This document shows, piece by piece, positions 12,253 through 23,396 of a DNA stretch of 64,000 nt. Position 1 is the stretch's first letter; every line of letters begins with the position of its first letter. The translations under genes were made by a program, and so were the position numbers. The stretch comes from Haliotis rubra (Eukaryota), in NCBI RefSeq assembly GCF_003918875.1, contig NW_025767524.1, forward strand, positions 2,294,001 through 2,358,000, read 5' to 3'. The notes beneath the pieces were generated by a model. That model saw only the letters and a list, made by a program, of their open reading frames with translations, was not told where the DNA came from and ran no database searches.

Positions 12253-14169
12253 AACAAATTCTCAGACTTTTTGCCAGTCAAAATATGCATAAGATGATGT
12301 AAAGATATTTGACCCTGTCAGATGTAAAGATATGAATTCAATTATTGTTCCGGATTTCACAAATATATGAAAACCCCCAGCATTTTTTCATTGTGTAGGC
12401 ATTTGTCCACCTTGTCTGTTGGAATGTTCCATTTATGTAATGGGGAGAAGATACTGCTGCTTGAAATCACTGGTGCATTACTTTGTTTATTCTACACTGT
12501 AGGCATTTGGAGACTACGCCGTCGCATCCAGTCTGCCACCTAACGAAAACATCTTCACAGATACTTCGCAAAACACAGATAACACATTTCTACTCGACAA
12601 GGTGATATACTGTCCAAATGTGCGTTGGGATGTAATATCTTAATAATAATCATATTTCAAACATTTCCTGAGCTTGCATGACCTGGTGCTTAGATAACTT
12701 TTTTGGAATTCGCTCAAATATGACAACGGTCTAGTCAAATATGACAACGGTCTAGTACATGTGAACACTGACATAGCGGTAGCACTAATTAGTGTGTAAA
12801 TCATTCTGCTACAGGAAATAAACACGGCTGTATCTGCAAGGTGTGTATAAATTCTATACTAGTGAAGTGGACGCGATGGTAGCAGAAATACAAGTGTGTG
12901 TCATGTACTATTGTGAAATGGACACGATCGCAGAAAAGCAGGTGTACACTATTCTACAAGTAGAAATCGACGCACGGGTTGCACAAATGCACATGTAAAT
13001 CATCTATAAAGGAAATAGTCATGGTGGTGGCATGCGTATGAGAATCCTACACACAATGTGAATGACCCCCCTAAAATTAATGTACAAAGTAAGTGACCCC
13101 CCCTGCATGTCATGTACAAAATCGATGACCCCCCTTCCCCTTCCAATATTTTGTAAGCATAATTTTTAAATATTTTAATGTACAAAATTGCTGACCCCCA
13201 GAAACATGTGTACAAAATTGATGACACCCCCTACCTCCCAGAACAAAATGGGTGACAACACCACCCCCTCTCTCTCTTAAAATCACCCCCTAGCCATAAA
13301 TTATGAACGGTCCCTAAGGGGACTTGTCGGTTATGGTCAGTACAATGTGTCCGACTTTGTTATCTATTGCACACAGTCAGGTGGTCAGGTTCGCTGACTT
13401 GGCGGATCCATGTCATCGTATCCCGATTACGTAGCTCGATGCTCATCATGTTGATCACTGGATTGTCTGGTCCAGATTCGATTAGTTACATACCGCCGCC
13501 ATATAGTTGGAATAATGTTGGGTGCAACGTTTAACACCAACCAAACAAAATATTGCACATATCTGTGTTGGTGAGAAATGTGTGCTAAATCATAAGTGCT
13601 AAATCTAACAATCAGCTACAACCACGTAGCGTCTCTAATATGTCAAATATACTTGAACGAGATGGTTAACACCCACTTCACCTCATAGTTGTGTCTGTGT
13701 CAAAGGTCGTATGGCTTGCTGAGATGTGTCATGTCAGTGAAGGGCCAAGAATAGGTCAGAAACGTAGGAGTGTATAGAGGTTGATGTCTAAAAAAGGAAA
13801 TACATCTAAATGCCGACCAAAGACTTTTCCCAGTTATGGTCCTTATCATCAACATCACGCATGAGATCGGGGTGTCACTAAGATAGAGAACTTACTTAAC
13901 ATACGGACTGGTTCGGAAACAAATACTTCTACAGTTTATGCGTCCAATAATAATTAATTTCCTGGGTGGCAACCGTGGAACTGAAACGATCTTATTTAAT
14001 TCAAAGAAAATAATCGCTTTCATTTCACAAATTATATAAACTTTACATTTTCCATGTTTGAGTTCACTACATGGTGTGAAGAAAAACTGAAACAAACAAA
14101 ACACGTGCTCTTGTCCATGTATGCCAACAAAAATGTAACATCATTGACTCTTGTCACATGTTATTGATT

Positions 14170-14610: not shown

Positions 14611-15594
14611 CTTTGCTGGGTTCAGTCACACTCCTCCCAGTATATAAGTGGCATGTGCACCTTCTGAAACAATCAATAACAGAACAAATGACAATCAAGA
14701 GCCTTTCTTAATAGCAGAATTAAACAGTGTTATATATTCAATGAACGTATATGGGATTATCTTGGAGAATAATAGTTTTGTTAACAAAGGCTAATGACTA
14801 CATATTCTATATATGCTCGTGACGCTGAGTATGAAAGCACAACAATAAATAAAAGTAGTAATGGGCATAACACATATGCTAAATGCACATGCATTTCCAT
14901 AGTATTGCATGCAAAAATGATTATATTAATTGACAACAAGTACAATCAGTGGCTGTTCTAGTTCTTCGATATAAACGTAACCTCATTAAAATTATTTCTT
15001 GTTCAGAGGTTGGTGAATTTGCCATAATTCACGCATTCAGATTATACAATTTATGAAACCTATAGCTATAATCACGTTGACTTGATTCTTATCATGTGTC
15101 AAAACCTTATGAAATAACACAAAATGAAGTTAAATTATATCTTTAAACAATACTAAAATAATACCCTCAAATACTCTAATTGGAGACCATTTCCAGAAAG
15201 GAGTTTAGAGAAGAGTTTAATGTCAACCTTAAAAGGGCCTCCCGGTGGCGGTCATGGTCAAATGCATTGGCAGTTACGAAACCTACGCTTTGCTCAGCTA
15301 CGCAGTCGCCATCCATTTGTGGCCATAGTGATTATGAGGATTTGGGTCTGCTTGATCTCTAACTACTGTGTTTAAGAAACGGCAAATACATCAGCAAATT
15401 GATCTCGTTCTTGGAAGTTGGTCCGGATCCACACACAAAGTTTACTTTGGATCAGAGCTTACCAGCCGAGCATCACTGACGCCAACTGAATATTTCTGTC
15501 GAACTGCTCCTTGACTAGAAAAGGATTACACAAGCAGACGTAAGTAAACGAAATACAAAGTCCATGCAATGTCCAATTTTCAGAAATTCGGCAA

Positions 15595-15660
15595 CAAATG
15601 ACGCACGTGTTATTCAACCGGAAGTTTTGAAAACGACATTTGCCGGAAACATACGATTCG
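15595..15660. promoter_or_regulatory. Probable housekeeping promoter (CRE/E-box-like and ETS sites) upstream of the microprotein-NDUFB1 unit
   Basis: TGACGCACGTG, ACCGGAAGT and GCCGGAAAC clustered in a locally CpG-richer patch. Confidence 0.45.
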
Positions 15661-16096
15661 TATGACCTTCACCTGCCTGGAGATGCATTGAGGTTGTTCA
15701 TGCCGTTTACAATTTCTAGCTAAATGTTAGACTTTCTGATCTTTACTTACTTGTTTCATTTAGATGTATGATGTGTGATATATTATATATCTTGTGTATT
15801 TAAAATTAAGTCTTTTTCCAAACAAAATTTACATGGCATTGCAAATTTCACAGTTCTCAGAGGACATCAAGCACAGAAGTCTTCCATTCTCAAGTCAAGA
15901 TCATTTCAGTTTCACATACGTAATCAAAGACATCCAATGTTTTCTGACTGGTTAAATTTCATCTTGCATACATGCAGGAGATCTTGACATAATTCATCGT
16001 TCGGGTCATTTTAAATCTGATATTATGAGATAAACATAAACCATATATCGGTATATGGTCCCTGCATAAACAAATGTACCTAAGATAACAGTGACT

Positions 16097-16519
16097 CTGA
16101 AAGGGTCGTTGTCGGCACGGGTACTACAGATGTGTACCCCAGGTACTTTTCTGTGTACAGAAATGTACCCTGGCCATAATCAGAATACAGAAATGTACCC
16201 TAGGACGATTCCATTCTGCATTGTGGAGTTTTCTTGATCAGAACGGTCATACTGTTGTATTAGATGCATTTGATATCGTTATATAAGAGCATACACAGTA
16301 ACAAACATGTCACGGTGCACAACGTACACCACTCGCAATCAGCTGAACGGGAACAACTACATACGGTTTCGGTATTGGGTTGCGGAATATGTACTCGTCC
16401 GTCGTTTAGGGTACCGGGTACGTTTCTGTAGTTTGTCTTTGTTTAGGGTACATGTCTGAATGCAGAAACGTACCTGGGGTACATACCTGTAGTACCTGTG
16501 CAAACAACGACCCCTTCAG
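16097..16519. mobile_element. MITE with ~100-bp terminal inverted repeats
   Basis: ctgaaagggtcgttgtcggcacgggtactacag... at the left end and its reverse complement ...ctgtagtacctgtgcaaacaacgaccccttcag at the right end. Another right arm lies at ~2040-2150. Confidence 0.75.
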
Positions 16520-17385
16520 CAACAGTGACATGGAAGAATTCAAACAACATGCCCCATTTCTGAACACGATAAACACTTTTCGTGCAAAGTTCATGCATAA
16601 CTGAATGCATATCTAAGCTTGGCAAGAACAGTTTTAGTTTGGTGTGCCATAGTTTGTAACTCAGTATTATAGTGAACTCGAATGGCCACTAATTTTAGTT
16701 CATCATAGCTGTATTTTTAATATGCATTTTGACTAAAGTAGACTTTATACAATAAGGGGTAAGGGCCATAAAACATTTTGTTATATCCATCATACTTAAC
16801 TTACTGAAGATTATGTTATTCAGTGGCATTTACTAGTTGTACATTGAACCAAGATATTTTTATGGATTGAATAGCGTGAGACCATTCCAGGTCCTTCATC
16901 TCAGGTCCCTAGAATGGACCTTCAGTAACTGAGAGAATGCTTTAATCCATAAAAATATCTTGGACATAACTGAAGATTATTATTCATCTAATAGTGAAAT
17001 CGGGTTGAATGAACCTTCAGTAACCCATGCTTTTCGTGGTTGACTAATGGGATCGGGTGGTCAGGCTCGGTGACTTGGTTGACACATATCATTGGTTTCC
17101 AATTGCGCAGATCGATGCTCATGCAGTTGATCACTGGCTTGTCTGGTCCAGACTCGATTATTTACAGACTGCTGCCATATAGCTGGAATATTGCTGAGTG
17201 CGGCATAAAACTAAAGTCACTCTCTCACTACTAGTGAAGGGACTACAGTTTTCATCAGGTTGAAAAGCTAACATGTTTAATTTAGCTGAAATATGTTAAG
17301 AGCAACAGGGACTAATTTCAGTTGACACCTGTTTCGGTTAAGACAACAGTAAGTCTAATCATGGTACTTCTTTCTGTTCCAGTTG

Positions 17386-20300
17386 ATGGATGGACTATCA
17401 GGAAATCTGACACTGTGGCAGAAGTCCAGCAAGTTCCTCAGGAGAAATTTTTGGTCACTCTTCTTTCCTTTGGCTGCATCGACAGCTATCCTGTTAGATT
17501 TGTCAAAGACAAGGCGTTTCAAAGCTAATCAAGCCCTTCTAGCTAAACAAGCAGAGATCAAAGCTCAAAGTAAGTAACTCCTACAACTCCAATCAACGTG
17601 ATTCTTATCCTTTTAAAAATATCATCTTTAAATGTAAAATACCTAAACAGATGCCAACCTTTCAGGTTTTACAACAGGAGCTTAAAAAAATATTATGAAC
17701 TGACAAAATATTCTGCTGTAAGTTCAAGAATCGATCCTTTTTTATATTTGTGGTCTATCTGCGACCTTCTGCTTTCTGAATGATGTTCTTAACTTCTGTA
17801 TGATTTATTCTATGTGATGTTTTTCTAATCGAAATCTACAATATGTATTTAAACATGACTGGAGTCCATGTACCAATGGAAAAATTAAAAAAATTAAAAA
17901 CAAAAGAAGTAACTCCTACAAATGGTCTTGAGACATTGGTGCTACTGGTACATCTCACTTATAGACTGTCACTGTTGACAAAGTTCAGGGACTTGTCTAG
18001 AATTCGAAAATATAAAATAAAATAATTTCCCTTTGTGGGAACGATGGATTTTGTAGGAGTTTTTATTTTCTCAAAGTACTTTTGTAAAATTAAGCACTGA
18101 TGCCTTTTGGTGATCGTTATTGGTCCTTTGTCAAAATACAAAGCACTGATGCCTATATTTTGGTGATGAGCCCAGAATTTATTGGTGGGAAAAATCCCTG
18201 TTGTATCCCCAAACAATCTGCTCCAGCATTGCCACCTATCTAATGGTAAAGTGGTAGTCCAAATAGAAATGTGACAAGCCCCTACTATCATATGTTTGTC
18301 TCAGACTGGTACTTTATATATATACTAGGCACATAAAGAAACTGCATACAAAAATTTAAAATCTAAATTTATCAAACCTGTGTAGACACATAAGGATTTA
18401 AACTCAGAGATTAGTGACATGTATCCAACATGCATGCACGTGCCACGTTCTGTGACGTCAGTGGGTTCGTCCTTGAGACGTGCAATACGTTGTTGCACGT
18501 CCATTCTGGGAAAGAGAATCAGAGCAAATGAATGCCACACAATACTGTCACTTTGGAAAGCTCAACCCCTGCCCTTGCGATCGTTCAAAAATTAAACGGC
18601 TATTGAAACGCATAGCATGCCAAGGCTCACGTGTGCACAACGTCATGAGGCCATTGGGATGGTCCCTGGGGGAATGTCTCAACGACAAGTGGCTGCACAT
18701 TTCCACTGCCACCGGAACACCATTTCTGCACTGGTGAGACGCTACCAGAACACCAGCTACCGGCCACGTTCTGGACGTCCACGTGTAACAACGCCAAGAC
18801 AGGACAGATGGATAAGGGTGACCCATCTTCGCCACAGGTTTCAGACTGCAGTGATGACTGCCCGAACCATCCCAGGACTTCGCCGTATCCACCCCAACAC
18901 AGTTCGACAACGTTTACATCATCACGGGATCAGACCACGACGTTCCGCCATACGGCCTATCCTGACACAACGTCATCGACAAGCTCGCTGAATGTGGTGC
19001 CGGAATCATGTCCGCGGACCCTTGTTTTGGTGGAGAAATGTTGTTTTGACAGATGAGTCCAGGTTTAACATTATGGGAGAACGTTATGCACAGGCCTGTG
19101 TCTTGGAGAGGAATCGCTTTGGTGGTGGTTCCGTGATGATTTGGGTTGAATCACAGCACGCCAAAGAACTCCTTTGGTGATTGTTCAGGGCAACTTAACT
19201 GGTGTGGGCTACAGGGATCAGATTCTTCGACCTGTGGCAATTCCTTTTCTGCAACGTCATGGCCCTGGGTTAACATACCAACAGGACAATGCCCGCCCAC
19301 ATACGGCAAGGGTTGCTATGGATTTCTTGCAACACCACAACGTTGACTTACTGCCTTGGCCTGCAAATTCACCGGATCTCTCCCCGATAGAGCATGTTTG
19401 GGACGAGATGGATCGACGTCTACGCCATCTTCCTCATCCGGCAGATAACGTCCTTGACCTTGCAACAGAACTTGAGAGAATCTGGCGTGACATCCCACAA
19501 GCCTTCCTTGCACGTTTGATAGGCTCTATACGTCGTCGATGCACTGCTGTTCTCAATGCCTATGGTCGACATATCCCTTATTGAGCTTGTGACATGGTCG
19601 TTTGACCCCTGTCCCGCTTGTGGACTCGTGACGTCATTGTGATTGACTTTTAAATTGAAATTCTCCCAACTTGTTATGGTCTCATGATCCCTCCATTAAA
19701 GTTTATATGTGCCTTTGACATTGTTATCGTACTAATATTTTGACAATGCACAGTTTCTTTATGTGGCTAGTATATATTGGTAGACCTGTATTACAAATTA
19801 ATGGAGATGAAAGGTGATTGTGCAGTACCTGAATGAATTTTGATGGAATTATGCTCATGTTTACATAGTTTGTATGGTGTACACTTGAGTGGGTAATGTT
19901 TACTGCACAGTTCGATACAGCTGCATTGTTTCTGAGTGGCTTTGCACAATATTCAGTTATTCATCTCCCAATTTCTCCCCAAACACTTCTTTGAAATACC
20001 ACACGCATGAATTGATACAAATGTGGAATGCTGTGCAAAAGCACAATCAATGCTTTGTCTGGCCATTACAAGCCTCCATGAAATACTGGTTGCTGAATAA
20101 AGCATGCACACCAGAACTGTGCCCATATTAATGTTCTTGGTTTGTAGTAACCATAGCTGTATGTTTCACCGTAAACTGTGAAAGTCTTAACACCTGCCTC
20201 ACTGTTGGCTTTCCTCCTACATCAAGCTGACATGTCCTGATAAGATTGAAACTGTTCAGTGTCCAATAATGTTTTCCAGTTTTAATTTTGTTAGCTACAA

Positions 20301-20533
20301 AATCACCTGAATCTCTACCATTGACATCCTCGATCATCTCCAGGGAATATACGTTACGATAAATCTCCACTAGCACCCTGGATGCATCTATGGCTCGGCC
20401 CGATAATTTTATTACCCTGGAGATTATCGAGGATGTACCATTGACTGATTTACAGTTTTGTCCTAATGGAAGTCATGACTGGATTATTTGTTAATGAAAT
20501 AATTCTACATGTACTCTATTGCTTTCAGGCTGA
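17386..20533 (+). CDS. Unrecognised ~62-aa single-TM microprotein, upstream cistron of NDUFB1 (exons 17386-17569 and 20529-20533)
   Basis: Acceptor ctttctgttccag ends at 17382 and a GTAAGT donor starts at 17570. Splicing to the NDUFB1 acceptor gives A|GC TGA. Protein: MDGLSGNLTLWQKSSKFLRRNFWSLFFPLAASTAILLDLSKTRRFKANQALLAKQAEIKAQS. Confidence 0.7.
18323..19772 (+). mobile_element. Tc1/mariner DNA transposon with a disrupted DDE transposase (18617-19584)
   Basis: TIRs TACTAG(G/C)CACATAAAGAAACTG flanked by TA. Paired-type HTH, RSGRPRVTT, LTDESRF, QQDNARPH and WPANSPDLSPIEHVW. In-frame stop at ~18991 plus a frameshift. Confidence 0.95.
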
Positions 20534-20535
20534 AA

Positions 20536-20718
20536 ATGAAGTTCTCCATGCTAAGAGCGAGGTTTGTGCCCTACTACATGGCATTGCTGATACCACCGGC
20601 AGCCTACTTTGTTGGCAGTTACTTTCAAGGGCAGCTTGATGAGACACAGACGCTGTATCGAAACAAAAGTCGATTGTTTGGTGGCCGCAAATTAGCTGAG
20701 GGAGAGAAGGCATGGTGA
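20536..20718 (+). CDS. NDUFB1: NADH dehydrogenase 1 beta subcomplex subunit 1 (MNLL)
   Basis: 60 aa: MKFSMLRARFVPYYMALLIPPAAYFVGSYFQGQLDETQTLYRNKSRLFGGRKLAEGEKAW. TM with Pro, RNKSxLF and a terminal W match NDUFB1. Acceptor ends at 20528; AATAAA at 20820. Confidence 0.88.
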   Translation: MKFSMLRARFVPYYMALLIPPAAYFVGSYFQGQLDETQTLYRNKSRLFGGRKLAEGEKAW

Positions 20719-21559
20719 TGGATGCAAGACTAATGAATGTGTGCGGTGTAGAACGGGGACTTAGACTTTATCACATTTTGAATTGGACTGTAAATTATTG
20801 ATCCTCTCTGTAAAATAGAAATAAAGGATTTAGTAATTTATGTGTTTGACAGTTATTTTTTATGTTCCCTACAGCATAGGCTCAAGGGAGTTGTTGTCCA
20901 TAGCTTGTCTTTGACTTGTGACAGTTCATTATGGAAATGTGGTTTATGTTGGACAAGCAGATGTTATGATCAATTCTGACATGAATGTGAAAGAAACAGT
21001 GATTTCTTTTTATCAGAACAGTCTACAGATTTACCTTTTCCAAAGAGCATGGATATTTAGAGTTAATGTGACTAATAGGGAACCTCCATGTGTGACACTC
21101 ATCTGTTAGTGAGTGGATACAATGTGTGAAGTCCATTTCAGGTGTACCCGCCATGATGTTGCTGGAATATTGCTAAAGGGGTGTAAAAACGTACTCACTC
21201 ACTCACTCATTGAGATGTTTGTCAGCAACAGTACATTGGTCATTGTCGGAGTCAGTGAAAGTTGTTTTACACTATCGTCCTCAGCATTACACCAGTTTGT
21301 AAAATAACCAGAAAGTCAATACATCAGTCTGCAAGAAGTCTTATTGTAATGGTCAACACAAGAGTTGCAATACATGAGGTACTCTTTCTGGCAAGCATGT
21401 AGTACCCAGTTTGCCCTGCAATCCACACAGGCTGATGAGCAGTGACATATGGTACAGGACATTTCTGCTGAGGGGGGCTCATATGACAAGTTTATGAATA
21501 GCAGCTGTGTATGCAACATATGACCCATTCATTCAACACATGATCTACTTTCCAGTGGA

Positions 21560-21864
21560 TAAATGTTCAGCATTCAACACTTGACCCACTCAGCTGACAA
21601 ATGTTTAGCATTCAACACTTGACCCACTCAGCTGACAAATGTTTAGCATTCAACACTTGACCCACTCAGCTGACAAATGTTTAGCATTCAACACTTGACC
21701 CACTCAGCTGACAAATGTTTAGCATTCAACACTTGACCAAATGTTTAGCATTCAACACTTGAGCCACTCAGCTGACAAATGTTTAGCATTCAACACTGGG
21801 GTACTTTCTCTGTTCAGTCTTTCACACTTTCAGTTCAGCTGACAAATGTTTAGCATTCAACACT
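21560..21864. repeat. Minisatellite, 38-bp unit, about 7 partly degenerate copies
   Basis: Unit cagctgacaaatgtttagcattcaacacttgacccact repeated head-to-tail with no unique spacers. Confidence 0.9.
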
Positions 21865-23396
21865 GTCGGAAGACAACATGCCATTCAGATGTGCCAACTT
21901 CATCCAAGTGGACGGGATGCAGTCAACAGTGACATATTACAGTTGGTTCAGGAAGCTTGATAGGAACAATGTAACAACTTGGTAATAACATCAATGCCAC
22001 ATTTGACTTCATATGAATATCATGATATAACAATGACAAGGCAGTGTGAACTAGCAAAGCAGGCAAGTGGACAAATGTCAATTTGTAACCCTGTTCAGAT
22101 TGTACTAGATATGAAGATGTATCTGCATGGTGGGAAGGTCCAGTGAACATTACTCTACATCATGCTATCACAATACTCACTGTCCACTGTGCATGATCAG
22201 TCCTATATTCTTACCACTCCCAGAATGGTTGACTTGCTAAATGTGATGTCTACTGTTGCATGGTGGTCAAAATTGTGGGTGTGAATTGGACTCTTTTTCT
22301 ATAATTCTAATTATCATAATTAAAGTCAAGTTAGTAATCTGCTTGTAGAAGAGTCCCAACTTTTTTCTCTCTTAGACTTCAGGTTTTCTGGTGAAGAAAC
22401 TCTGTTAACCGGTATTCTAAGGAAATAAATAATTAAAGAATCTAAACATGTGTACAAACAGTTACATGAATATGTATGCACTATGTGCATTGTTCACCAT
22501 GCCATTCCTGTAATGTAACATTATATTTGCAATTGTTTCCTTGTTAAAATTAAGTTTGCATTAAAAAAAATTGTAAACCAATTTTTAAACAAATTGTTTA
22601 GCCTGAAAACAATGCTTCTGTAAATATGGACATTTAATGAACTTGGTAAATGCACATGCTGATGTAAATAAATAACATTCATACACAAAATAAATTACAA
22701 CTTTTTAACTGAAATCACAACCACCAATGAACATAACAAACTAAACAAATCAAAGCCTATGTGAGATCACAGTTTACAAAATACAGGAAAACTGTACCTT
22801 TTGGTACCAACAAATCTAATAAATTACACTCCTTTTGTTGTTCACCAAACTTGAATTCAAGTTTCGTTTGTACAAAAGCCAACGCAATGAATGCATGTTA
22901 TAGCTCTTGACCTAAACACTTGAGTGCTAACAGGTTTCAGAGAATTCACAATCCATTAATTCTGTTATTTCATTTGTTACAACTCTCAACTCAAGCAAAT
23001 GGTTGAAGGAAGAAGATTGTTTGGAGATATAAAAGGTGTTCAAAGTATTAAAAAGCATAGAATCTGACATCAACAAAACAAATTTGAACTTTTTACTTCT
23101 ACTAGCATTTAAACACACAAAATTGAAATCCATGAAAACCTGAGACCAGAACTTAAAAATGTCTTGAGTGCATTAAGCTAACTAGAAAAACTCCATATTC
23201 TATTGATATGTCATCGTCACTTGTCAGTGTACCAGACTGAAATGATAATAAACATTATTAAAGCGAACTGTACCCAAAGGCATGTAACACTACTCATTTG
23301 ATACTGACAGGTTTGACATTGTAAACAAATGCTAGAAAAACAAAAGCAACACATGGTAAACAAACAGTTTCCCAAAGGGAACTTTGATGTGAATAA

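Follow-up and report, generated by a model that had tools for sequence, protein, structure and literature searches.

A probable splice-assembled bicistronic NDUFB1 gene in Haliotis rubra, with an orthologue of the arthropod CG18624 upstream peptide

Introduction

The closest described relative of the gene studied here is Drosophila CG18624 (ND-MNLL, the NDUFB1 orthologue), on which a conserved-peptide upstream open reading frame (uORF) of 54 residues was identified (Hayden and Bosco, 2008, BMC Genomics 9:61; PMC2276209). That uORF has a Ka/Ks of 0.11 and was classed as regulatory; the pair that it forms with the main open reading frame (mORF) was followed in expressed sequence tags out to the tick Boophilus, and is known from Arthropoda, insects to ticks (PMC2276209). 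Two other bicistronic systems invite comparison: Drosophila sloth1/sloth2, where reporter assays demonstrated leaky scanning (Bosch et al., 2022, eLife 11:e82709; PMC9681215), and a set of green-algal bicistrons (Duenas et al., 2025, PNAS; PMC11892635). Here we analyze a 64,000-nucleotide (nt) stretch of the mollusc Haliotis rubra (NCBI RefSeq assembly GCF_003918875.1, contig NW_025767524.1, positions 2,294,001 to 2,358,000 of the forward strand; hereafter "the window," numbered from its first letter), in which a small open reading frame (ORF1) precedes NDUFB1, the gene of a complex I subunit, on one spliced mRNA.

An earlier sequence-only reading of this locus took the ORF1 peptide to be unknown, which does not hold for its family, as ORF1 is the orthologue of the CG18624 uORF published in 2008. 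Our search of the literature on NDUFB1, or on its Drosophila counterpart ND-MNLL (CG18624), in connection with bicistronic mRNAs or uORFs returned the 2008 paper and no later one (a mouse paper that apparently mentions Ndufb1 concerns Ndufb11 instead), and the literature found reports no function for the peptide. A term search of the main text of PMC2276209 gave no leaky scanning and no Mollusca, with "Kozak" and "transmembrane" in the reference list only; start contexts, AUG depletion and helix prediction are absent from its discussion.

Gene Structure and RNA Evidence

The sequence-only reading had placed an exon at 17383–17569, the ORF1 stop at 20531–20533 and the NDUFB1 start at 20536 in another frame, and the sequence bears out all three. 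Exon 2 (good acceptor ctttctgttccag, consensus donor GTAAGT) is open throughout in the frame of ATG 17386 and has stops in the other two. Spliced to position 20529 it reads ...CAA A/GC TGA AA ATG, giving an ORF1 of 62 aa whose TGA is separated by a 2-nt gap from the NDUFB1 ATG.

For RNA evidence, 6,000 bases (15000–20999) were compared with contigs assembled from four public runs; two studies of organism A supply three of these runs, and the fourth carries the label organism B. The 17569->20529 joint (GT..AG), which the earlier reading had put forward for checking, is present in the contigs of all four. A 717-nt contig of run X2 represents the complete mRNA (15331–15539, 17383–17569 and 20529–20838) and contains a second GT..AG joint, 15539->17383. 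RNA contigs terminate at 20836–20838, 11–13 nt past the AATAAA at 20820. The features of the gene are as follows.

15331 (or earlier)..15539, + strand: exon 1, 5' untranslated region (UTR), from the run X2 contig, which starts at 15331; the exon 1 uORF ends at 15375
15540..17382, + strand: intron 1 (GT..AG), from the RNA joint 15539->17383
17383..17569, + strand: exon 2, nearly all of ORF1, from sequence and RNA contigs
17386..17569, + strand: ORF1 coding sequence (CDS) part 1, 61 codons and the first base of codon 62
17390..17410, + strand: overlapping out-of-frame mini-ORF, six codons (MDYQEI) and TGA
17570..20528, + strand: intron 2 (GT..AG, 2959 nt), from the joint 17569->20529 in four runs
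20529..20533, + strand: end of ORF1, last two bases of codon 62 (Ser) and stop TGA
20529..20838, + strand: exon 3, the last exon, with ORF1 stop, 2-nt spacer, NDUFB1 CDS and 3' UTR; contig ends at 20836–20838
20536..20718, + strand: NDUFB1 (MNLL) CDS, 60 aa and stop, from PF08040, PDB chains and invertebrate orthologues
20820..20825, + strand: AATAAA polyadenylation signal, from sequence and contig ends

In exon 1, a TAG in frame with ORF1 lies eight codons 5' of the exon 1/2 junction, and ATG 17386 is therefore the first possible ORF1 start. The one ATG of exon 1 (15334) opens a 13-codon uORF, 4 nt from the contig end. Within ORF1 the sole contig difference is synonymous (17484 A>T, third position, ACA>ACT), and the non-coding exon 1 has six differences in 209 nt. 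The splice structure is thus directly observed in RNA, and we put the probability of the full reading, a single three-exon gene whose bicistronic mature mRNA yields both proteins, most likely by leaky scanning, at about 0.7.

Some 80 nt 3' of exon 1, at 15617–15650, intron 1 carries the motifs CCGGAAGT and GCCGGAAA, which are ETS/GABP-like. Such motifs are typical of nuclear oxidative phosphorylation (OXPHOS) promoters, and these may mark an alternative start site.

Identity of the Downstream Cistron

Several lines of sequence comparison support NDUFB1 as the identity of the downstream cistron. It matches Pfam PF08040 at 28.2 bits (curated cut-off 27) and is matched by the NDUFB1 chains of solved mammalian complex I in PDB (E ~2e-3). 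It also carries YRNKSRLFGG, an instance of the [FY]RNKSxLFGG motif that follows the single transmembrane helix, and aligns with nine invertebrate orthologues. A word-indexed protein search with NDUFB1 gave no match. An exhaustive HMMER search gave nine, eight of them true invertebrate orthologues; the ninth, P0007, is TPR-like and was rejected as false. Neither ORF1 nor NDUFB1 of Haliotis rubra was found in the protein collection searched.

ORF1 Homologues in Other Invertebrates

Taken alone, ORF1 has no match in Pfam, PDB or a word-indexed protein search. Homologues were sought by tblastn on the contigs of NDUFB1 orthologues, with matches in L003 (Elysia crispata by its accession; PMC13673630, PMC10700116; E 2e-5), L005 (2e-3), L007 (4e-10), L011 (5e-7) and L008–L010 (3e-5). 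All are on the same strand and just 5' of NDUFB1, the placement that the sequence-only reading had put forward for checking. In Plakobranchus ocellatus (L013), NDUFB1 lies 7 kb 3' of ORF1, also on the same strand. The pair is thereby present in at least six loci besides the window; L001 and L002 were left out, their upstream sequence being too short to show an ORF1 exon, and the NDUFB1 orthologues P0009 and P0013 were not placed on any contig. The genomic layout is a common one, in which a separate exon starts 3–5 nt 5' of the ORF1 ATG (ORF of 46–59 codons) and is followed by a 0.3–7 kb intron and by an exon opening 0–11 nt before the NDUFB1 ATG. In L008–L010, which are metatranscriptome contigs, both ORFs already occur together, with 16 nt between them, and provide direct RNA evidence of the bicistron in a second species.

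A profile search with six peptides found five entries: two Logan sequences (one identical to the L007 peptide, one close to that of L011), an ENA sequence identical to that of Elysia, and "hypothetical proteins" of Nucella lapillus and Plakobranchus ocellatus. The L007 peptide is nearest to that of Nucella. The suspicion in the sequence-only reading that ORF1 might already stand elsewhere as a hypothetical protein is thus borne out in two gastropods. A metagenome scan with a closer alignment recovered the L011 contig again and nothing else. An arthropod-like candidate, P0009, was rejected, as its N-terminal extension does not match the ORF1 profile. Synteny with the downstream kinase NEK2 was suspected in Elysia and received no confirmation from tblastx.

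Eight positions are invariant in the ORF1 alignment (R19, N21, S24, P28, I35, D38, T42 and K46). Between Elysia and Plakobranchus, the one close pair available for such an estimate (the window's own species is not part of it), dN is 0.143 and dS 0.99, giving a dN/dS of 0.14, below the bound of 1 that the earlier reading had named. In the same pair the ORF1 exon is 82% identical, and its flanking introns, compared over 300 nt on each side, are unalignable. The low dN/dS, together with a conserved exon amid unalignable introns, therefore shows that ORF1 is a protein-coding sequence under purifying selection and not a chance uORF.

Gene models at these loci are distorted by the bicistron. In Elysia (L003, 10001–17978), model P0008 (123 aa) cuts most of ORF1 out as an invented intron and reads into NDUFB1; in Plakobranchus (L013, 10001–16110), model P0014 (88 aa) adds a spurious N-terminal exon to ORF1, and a look-up of the contig found no gene called at the NDUFB1 exon. 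We attribute these artefacts in both species to the bicistronic arrangement.

L008 (388–1200), L009 (402–1007) and L010 (409–936) contain a third ORF of >270 aa, which has a methyltransferase-like motif (LVDLGCG) and is possibly BUD23-like. It begins ~20–40 nt after the NDUFB1 stop, just beyond an AATAAA; in L009 the sequence between NDUFB1 and the third ORF differs. This ORF may be a tightly packed neighbour, part of an operon-like unit or an assembly join.

Orthology to the Arthropod uORF Peptide

We built a profile from nine mollusc-type sequences, the window's ORF1 among them, and compared it with the arthropod peptides printed in the supplement of PMC2276209. It matched five of them: Bombyx (57.7 bits), Boophilus (43.7), Aedes (43.1), Drosophila (40.3) and Locusta (34.3). 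An NDUFB1 profile matched none of these five peptides. A common core is apparent, e.g., tick ...RRYSATVLFPTISGYLIYADYSRTQRWK beside L011 ...RRNWISVAFPTVLGYFIYADWSRTQRFK. From profile matches of 34–58 bits to five arthropod peptides it follows that the window's ORF1 is the orthologue of the CG18624/ND-MNLL conserved-peptide uORF.

Start Contexts and AUG Depletion

The start contexts described by the sequence-only reading are as it gave them. The ORF1 ATG of the window has a weak context (gacTTGATGG, T at -3 and G at +4) and that of NDUFB1 (CTGAAAATGA) has A at -3; ATG 17390 opens six codons and is the only other ATG in exon 2. Across seven loci that represent six independent lineages, T at -3 of ORF1 is found in 7/7 and G at +4 in 6/7, and NDUFB1 has a purine at -3 in all seven (A in six, G in one). 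Between the two starts, the six lineages together contain a single ATG against 12.8 expected from dinucleotide-preserving shuffles, and that one is the window's 17390, specific to Haliotis rubra. NDUFB1 coding sequences of equal length contain 26 internal ATGs. At the protein level, internal Met is absent from 328 ORF1 residues and accounts for nine of 355 in NDUFB1. Stop-to-start spacers of 2, 8, 12, 13, 16, 22 and 53 nt share no sequence.

The weak ORF1 start, the nearly AUG-free stretch and the purine at the NDUFB1 start are, by analogy, most likely a leaky-scanning signature. Experiments on Drosophila sloth1/sloth2 (PMC9681215) have shown that both signatures, start contexts and AUG depletion, indicate leaky scanning, as have experiments on green-algal bicistrons (PMC11892635).

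Character of the Predicted Peptide

Conservation of the peptide is centred on a hydrophobic helix and its flanks (RRN..S..FP......I..D..RT...K), whereas the C-terminal tail by the stop varies both in its sequence and in its length, for a total of 46–62 aa. The hydrophobic core comprises ~17 residues around the invariant Pro (approximately residues 22–38), with a mean Kyte–Doolittle hydropathy of 1.15–2.19 and flanks of net positive charge. AlphaFold, given a nine-sequence alignment, models helices at 10–20 and 22–60 with a mean pLDDT (per-residue model confidence) of 78. The ORF1 product is a predicted single-helix membrane microprotein. A Foldseek comparison of the ORF1 model with PDB returned no match, as expected for a single helix. 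In protein-language-model space the nearest neighbour is an unnamed 51-residue eukaryotic cluster (0.90–0.91), followed at 0.83–0.89 by clusters of NDUFB1, COX6C, ATP synthase k and j, NDUFB4 and MITRAC7; we treat this company of small single-pass OXPHOS subunits as a lead only.

Neighbouring Repeats

Intron 1 holds two repeats. The first (16097–16519) is a transposon-like inverted repeat of the MITE (miniature inverted-repeat transposable element) kind, with 104-nt arms that are 81% complementary and 215 nt apart. The second is like a short interspersed nuclear element (SINE), with two window copies (17040–17230, and 13377–13525 elsewhere) that are 81% alike; the intronic copy lies 150 nt 5' of the ORF1 exon. 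As its summed RNA contig depth is 15,000–180,000, in many variant contigs (with loose ends), this SINE-like repeat is among the genome's most abundant transcribed repeats. Intron 2 contains a further element:

18320..19700, strand not assigned: broken Tc1/mariner-type transposase relic, with ORFs at 18617–18991 and 19174–19584

RNA contigs over this relic show many differences, including a 37-nt replacement at 19072–19074, and it is therefore other copies of the element that are transcribed. Finally, a tandem array at 21552–21865 (38-nt unit, ~eight copies, 80–100% alike) lies 0.7 kb past the NDUFB1 poly(A) site.

Discussion

We infer from these sequence patterns that ORF1 is translated and that leaky scanning is the mechanism by which NDUFB1 is reached. 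Of the two routes that the sequence-only reading had offered, leaky scanning gains from the conserved T at -3 and the nearly AUG-free stretch, and termination–reinitiation loses from spacers of inconstant length (2–53 nt). Under the proposed mechanism, the ORF1 AUG would lie in a deliberately poor context (U at -3) such that only some 43S complexes initiate there. The remaining complexes would scan through the near AUG-free stretch and initiate at the NDUFB1 AUG with its purine at -3, and the strength of the ORF1 start site would set the ratio of the two proteins. In Haliotis rubra, the six-codon mini-ORF at 17390 may add a reinitiation route to NDUFB1, because 125 ATG-free nt follow it before the NDUFB1 start. 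The ORF1 stop always lies in the last exon (as in the window) or at most 53 nt 5' of the final exon junction, and nonsense-mediated decay usually follows a 50–55-nt rule; when ORF1 is translated, this placement would thus keep the mRNA out of that pathway.

What would make NDUFB1 translation depend on ORF1 in another way is reinitiation after ORF1 has been translated in full. The 2-nt distance between stop and start in the window, and the short spacers throughout, could suggest this, yet ORF1 runs to 46–62 codons, and reinitiation drops sharply past ~30 codons (studies summarised in PMC2276209). Furthermore, neither the length nor the sequence of the spacer is conserved, no stop/start overlap motif is kept, and this model would leave the conserved U at -3, like the AUG depletion, without a role; it is the least probable of the alternatives considered here. 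The same short spacers (2–53 nt) are equally what one might expect if ORF1 were mainly a cis-regulatory uORF, whose translation or nascent-peptide stalling throttles NDUFB1 and whose released peptide has no job of its own. That is how it was classed in 2008 (PMC2276209), and any translated uORF reduces downstream initiation. However, a conserved central helix with a variable tail is the opposite of known stalling peptides and argues instead for a free-standing membrane microprotein, and the AUG-free stretch and weak start point to selection for ribosome passage; we regard a purely regulatory ORF1 as unlikely. Likeness to NDUFB1 in size and architecture raises a different question, namely whether the two cistrons are ancient tandem paralogues, in the way that sloth1 and sloth2 are related to each other. 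PF08040 clusters are its nearest named ones in a protein atlas (0.88–0.89) and one of six family members matches PF08040 (E 0.084). Against this, BLASTP of ORF1 with NDUFB1 gave nothing, the window's ORF1 has no Pfam match, the hhalign profile–profile probability is 2.2%, the NDUFB1 profile matches no arthropod uORF peptide, and the [FY]RNKSxLFGG motif is absent from ORF1. Paralogy is therefore not supported by these sequence comparisons, and we consider it quite improbable.

The RNA data leave room for another arrangement, in which the two proteins come mostly from separate isoforms, ORF1 from the bicistronic mRNA and NDUFB1 from one that omits exon 2 or begins within intron 2. Each cistron occupies its own exon with an intron just 5' of its ATG, and skipping of exon 2 would yield a clean NDUFB1 mRNA. 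In addition, the break in the run X1 contig coincides with the 5' edge of exon 2, as would also fit more than one upstream exon. Such isoforms would weaken the single bicistronic gene proposed here, and several observations bear on it in the same direction. RNA contigs cover ~20200–20528 at ~20–70% of the spliced contig's depth, with none at 19800–20199; an intronic start there may give an mRNA without ORF1, and contig data could conceal a minor isoform that skips exon 2. The covered stretch is not repeated in the window and contains a 27-nt hairpin (20324–20349 / 20410–20436); its RNA may stem from transcription that begins in the intron, from an intermediate of processing or from a repeat located elsewhere. 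A leader beginning near 20200 would place nine ATGs before the NDUFB1 start, itself awkward for the isoform explanation. The comparative evidence also has its soft points: the donor sites assumed in L005 and L007 are weak and taken from DNA only, and a codon-aware control reduces the depletion of out-of-frame ATGs to one seen versus 3.75 expected (P ~0.045, a modest effect), as most of the depletion resides in amino-acid composition. Nevertheless, among the joints listed exon 3 is entered only from exon 2, in four of four runs, the metatranscriptome contigs L008–L010 are bicistronic, and separate isoforms leave the conserved AUG desert in ORF1 unexplained. We thus doubt that isoforms supply most of the two proteins, and retain the bicistronic gene as our reading.

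A further point on the opposing side is that the family profile matched no PDB chain, the solved Drosophila complex I included, and the ORF1 peptide is therefore no modelled stable subunit of any solved complex I. Nonetheless, we infer for this peptide a role in the inner mitochondrial membrane that is tied to NDUFB1 or complex I, and our best guess is that an assembly factor or loosely bound partner is likelier than a stable subunit. In its fullest form, this would make ORF1 an OXPHOS microprotein of at least protostome age that acts as an assembly factor or loose partner of the distal membrane arm of complex I, its dose locked to that of NDUFB1 by the common mRNA, in a ratio set by the conserved weak start; we offer this tentatively, as possible and clearly short of probable.

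As the pairing of microprotein and NDUFB1 on one mRNA is common to arthropods and molluscs, its origin probably lies in the protostome ancestor, over half a billion years in the past. So durable a linkage argues for a need to make both products jointly. Because no function was found reported for the peptide and solved complex I structures do not contain it, it is a concrete candidate for an assembly or regulatory factor of complex I that has so far been missed. The locus also illustrates how annotation pipelines mishandle bicistronic genes, as in the fused Elysia model and the NDUFB1 missed in Plakobranchus.

Comparison with Known Systems

Like the window, sloth1/sloth2 encodes two small single-pass mitochondrial-type peptides on one transcript, with a non-optimal Kozak context upstream and an optimal one downstream, and with an intercistronic gap of 5 nt where the window has 2 nt. 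By contrast, sloth1 and sloth2 are mutual paralogues that act on complex III, while here no paralogy is detectable, the downstream cistron encodes a complex I subunit, and the role of ORF1 is a proposed one. The green-algal bicistrons show the same weak Kozak-like context at ORF 1 and the same under-representation of AUG before ORF 2, though in unrelated proteins and an unrelated lineage, and their intercistronic regions are usually unspliced, whereas the cistrons here are joined by splicing.

The CG18624 uORF is the nearest match. Its peptide is homologous, with the core R[RK].....FP......I..D...T...K in both and a similar size (41–66 aa among CG18624-type peptides), and it sits directly 5' of the MNLL/NDUFB1 ORF on the mRNA, as ORF1 does. 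Purifying selection is of like strength (Ka/Ks 0.11 for the CG18624 uORF versus 0.14 here), and internal Met is absent from the arthropod peptides as from the mollusc-type ones. What differs is that the pair here occurs in Mollusca and in further invertebrates, its cistrons separated by an intron, and that in the window the ORF1 stop falls within the NDUFB1 exon. The gene pair as such was thus already known; what these data add is its reach into Mollusca and beyond Arthropoda, its splice-assembled layout and a conserved, putative leaky-scanning design.

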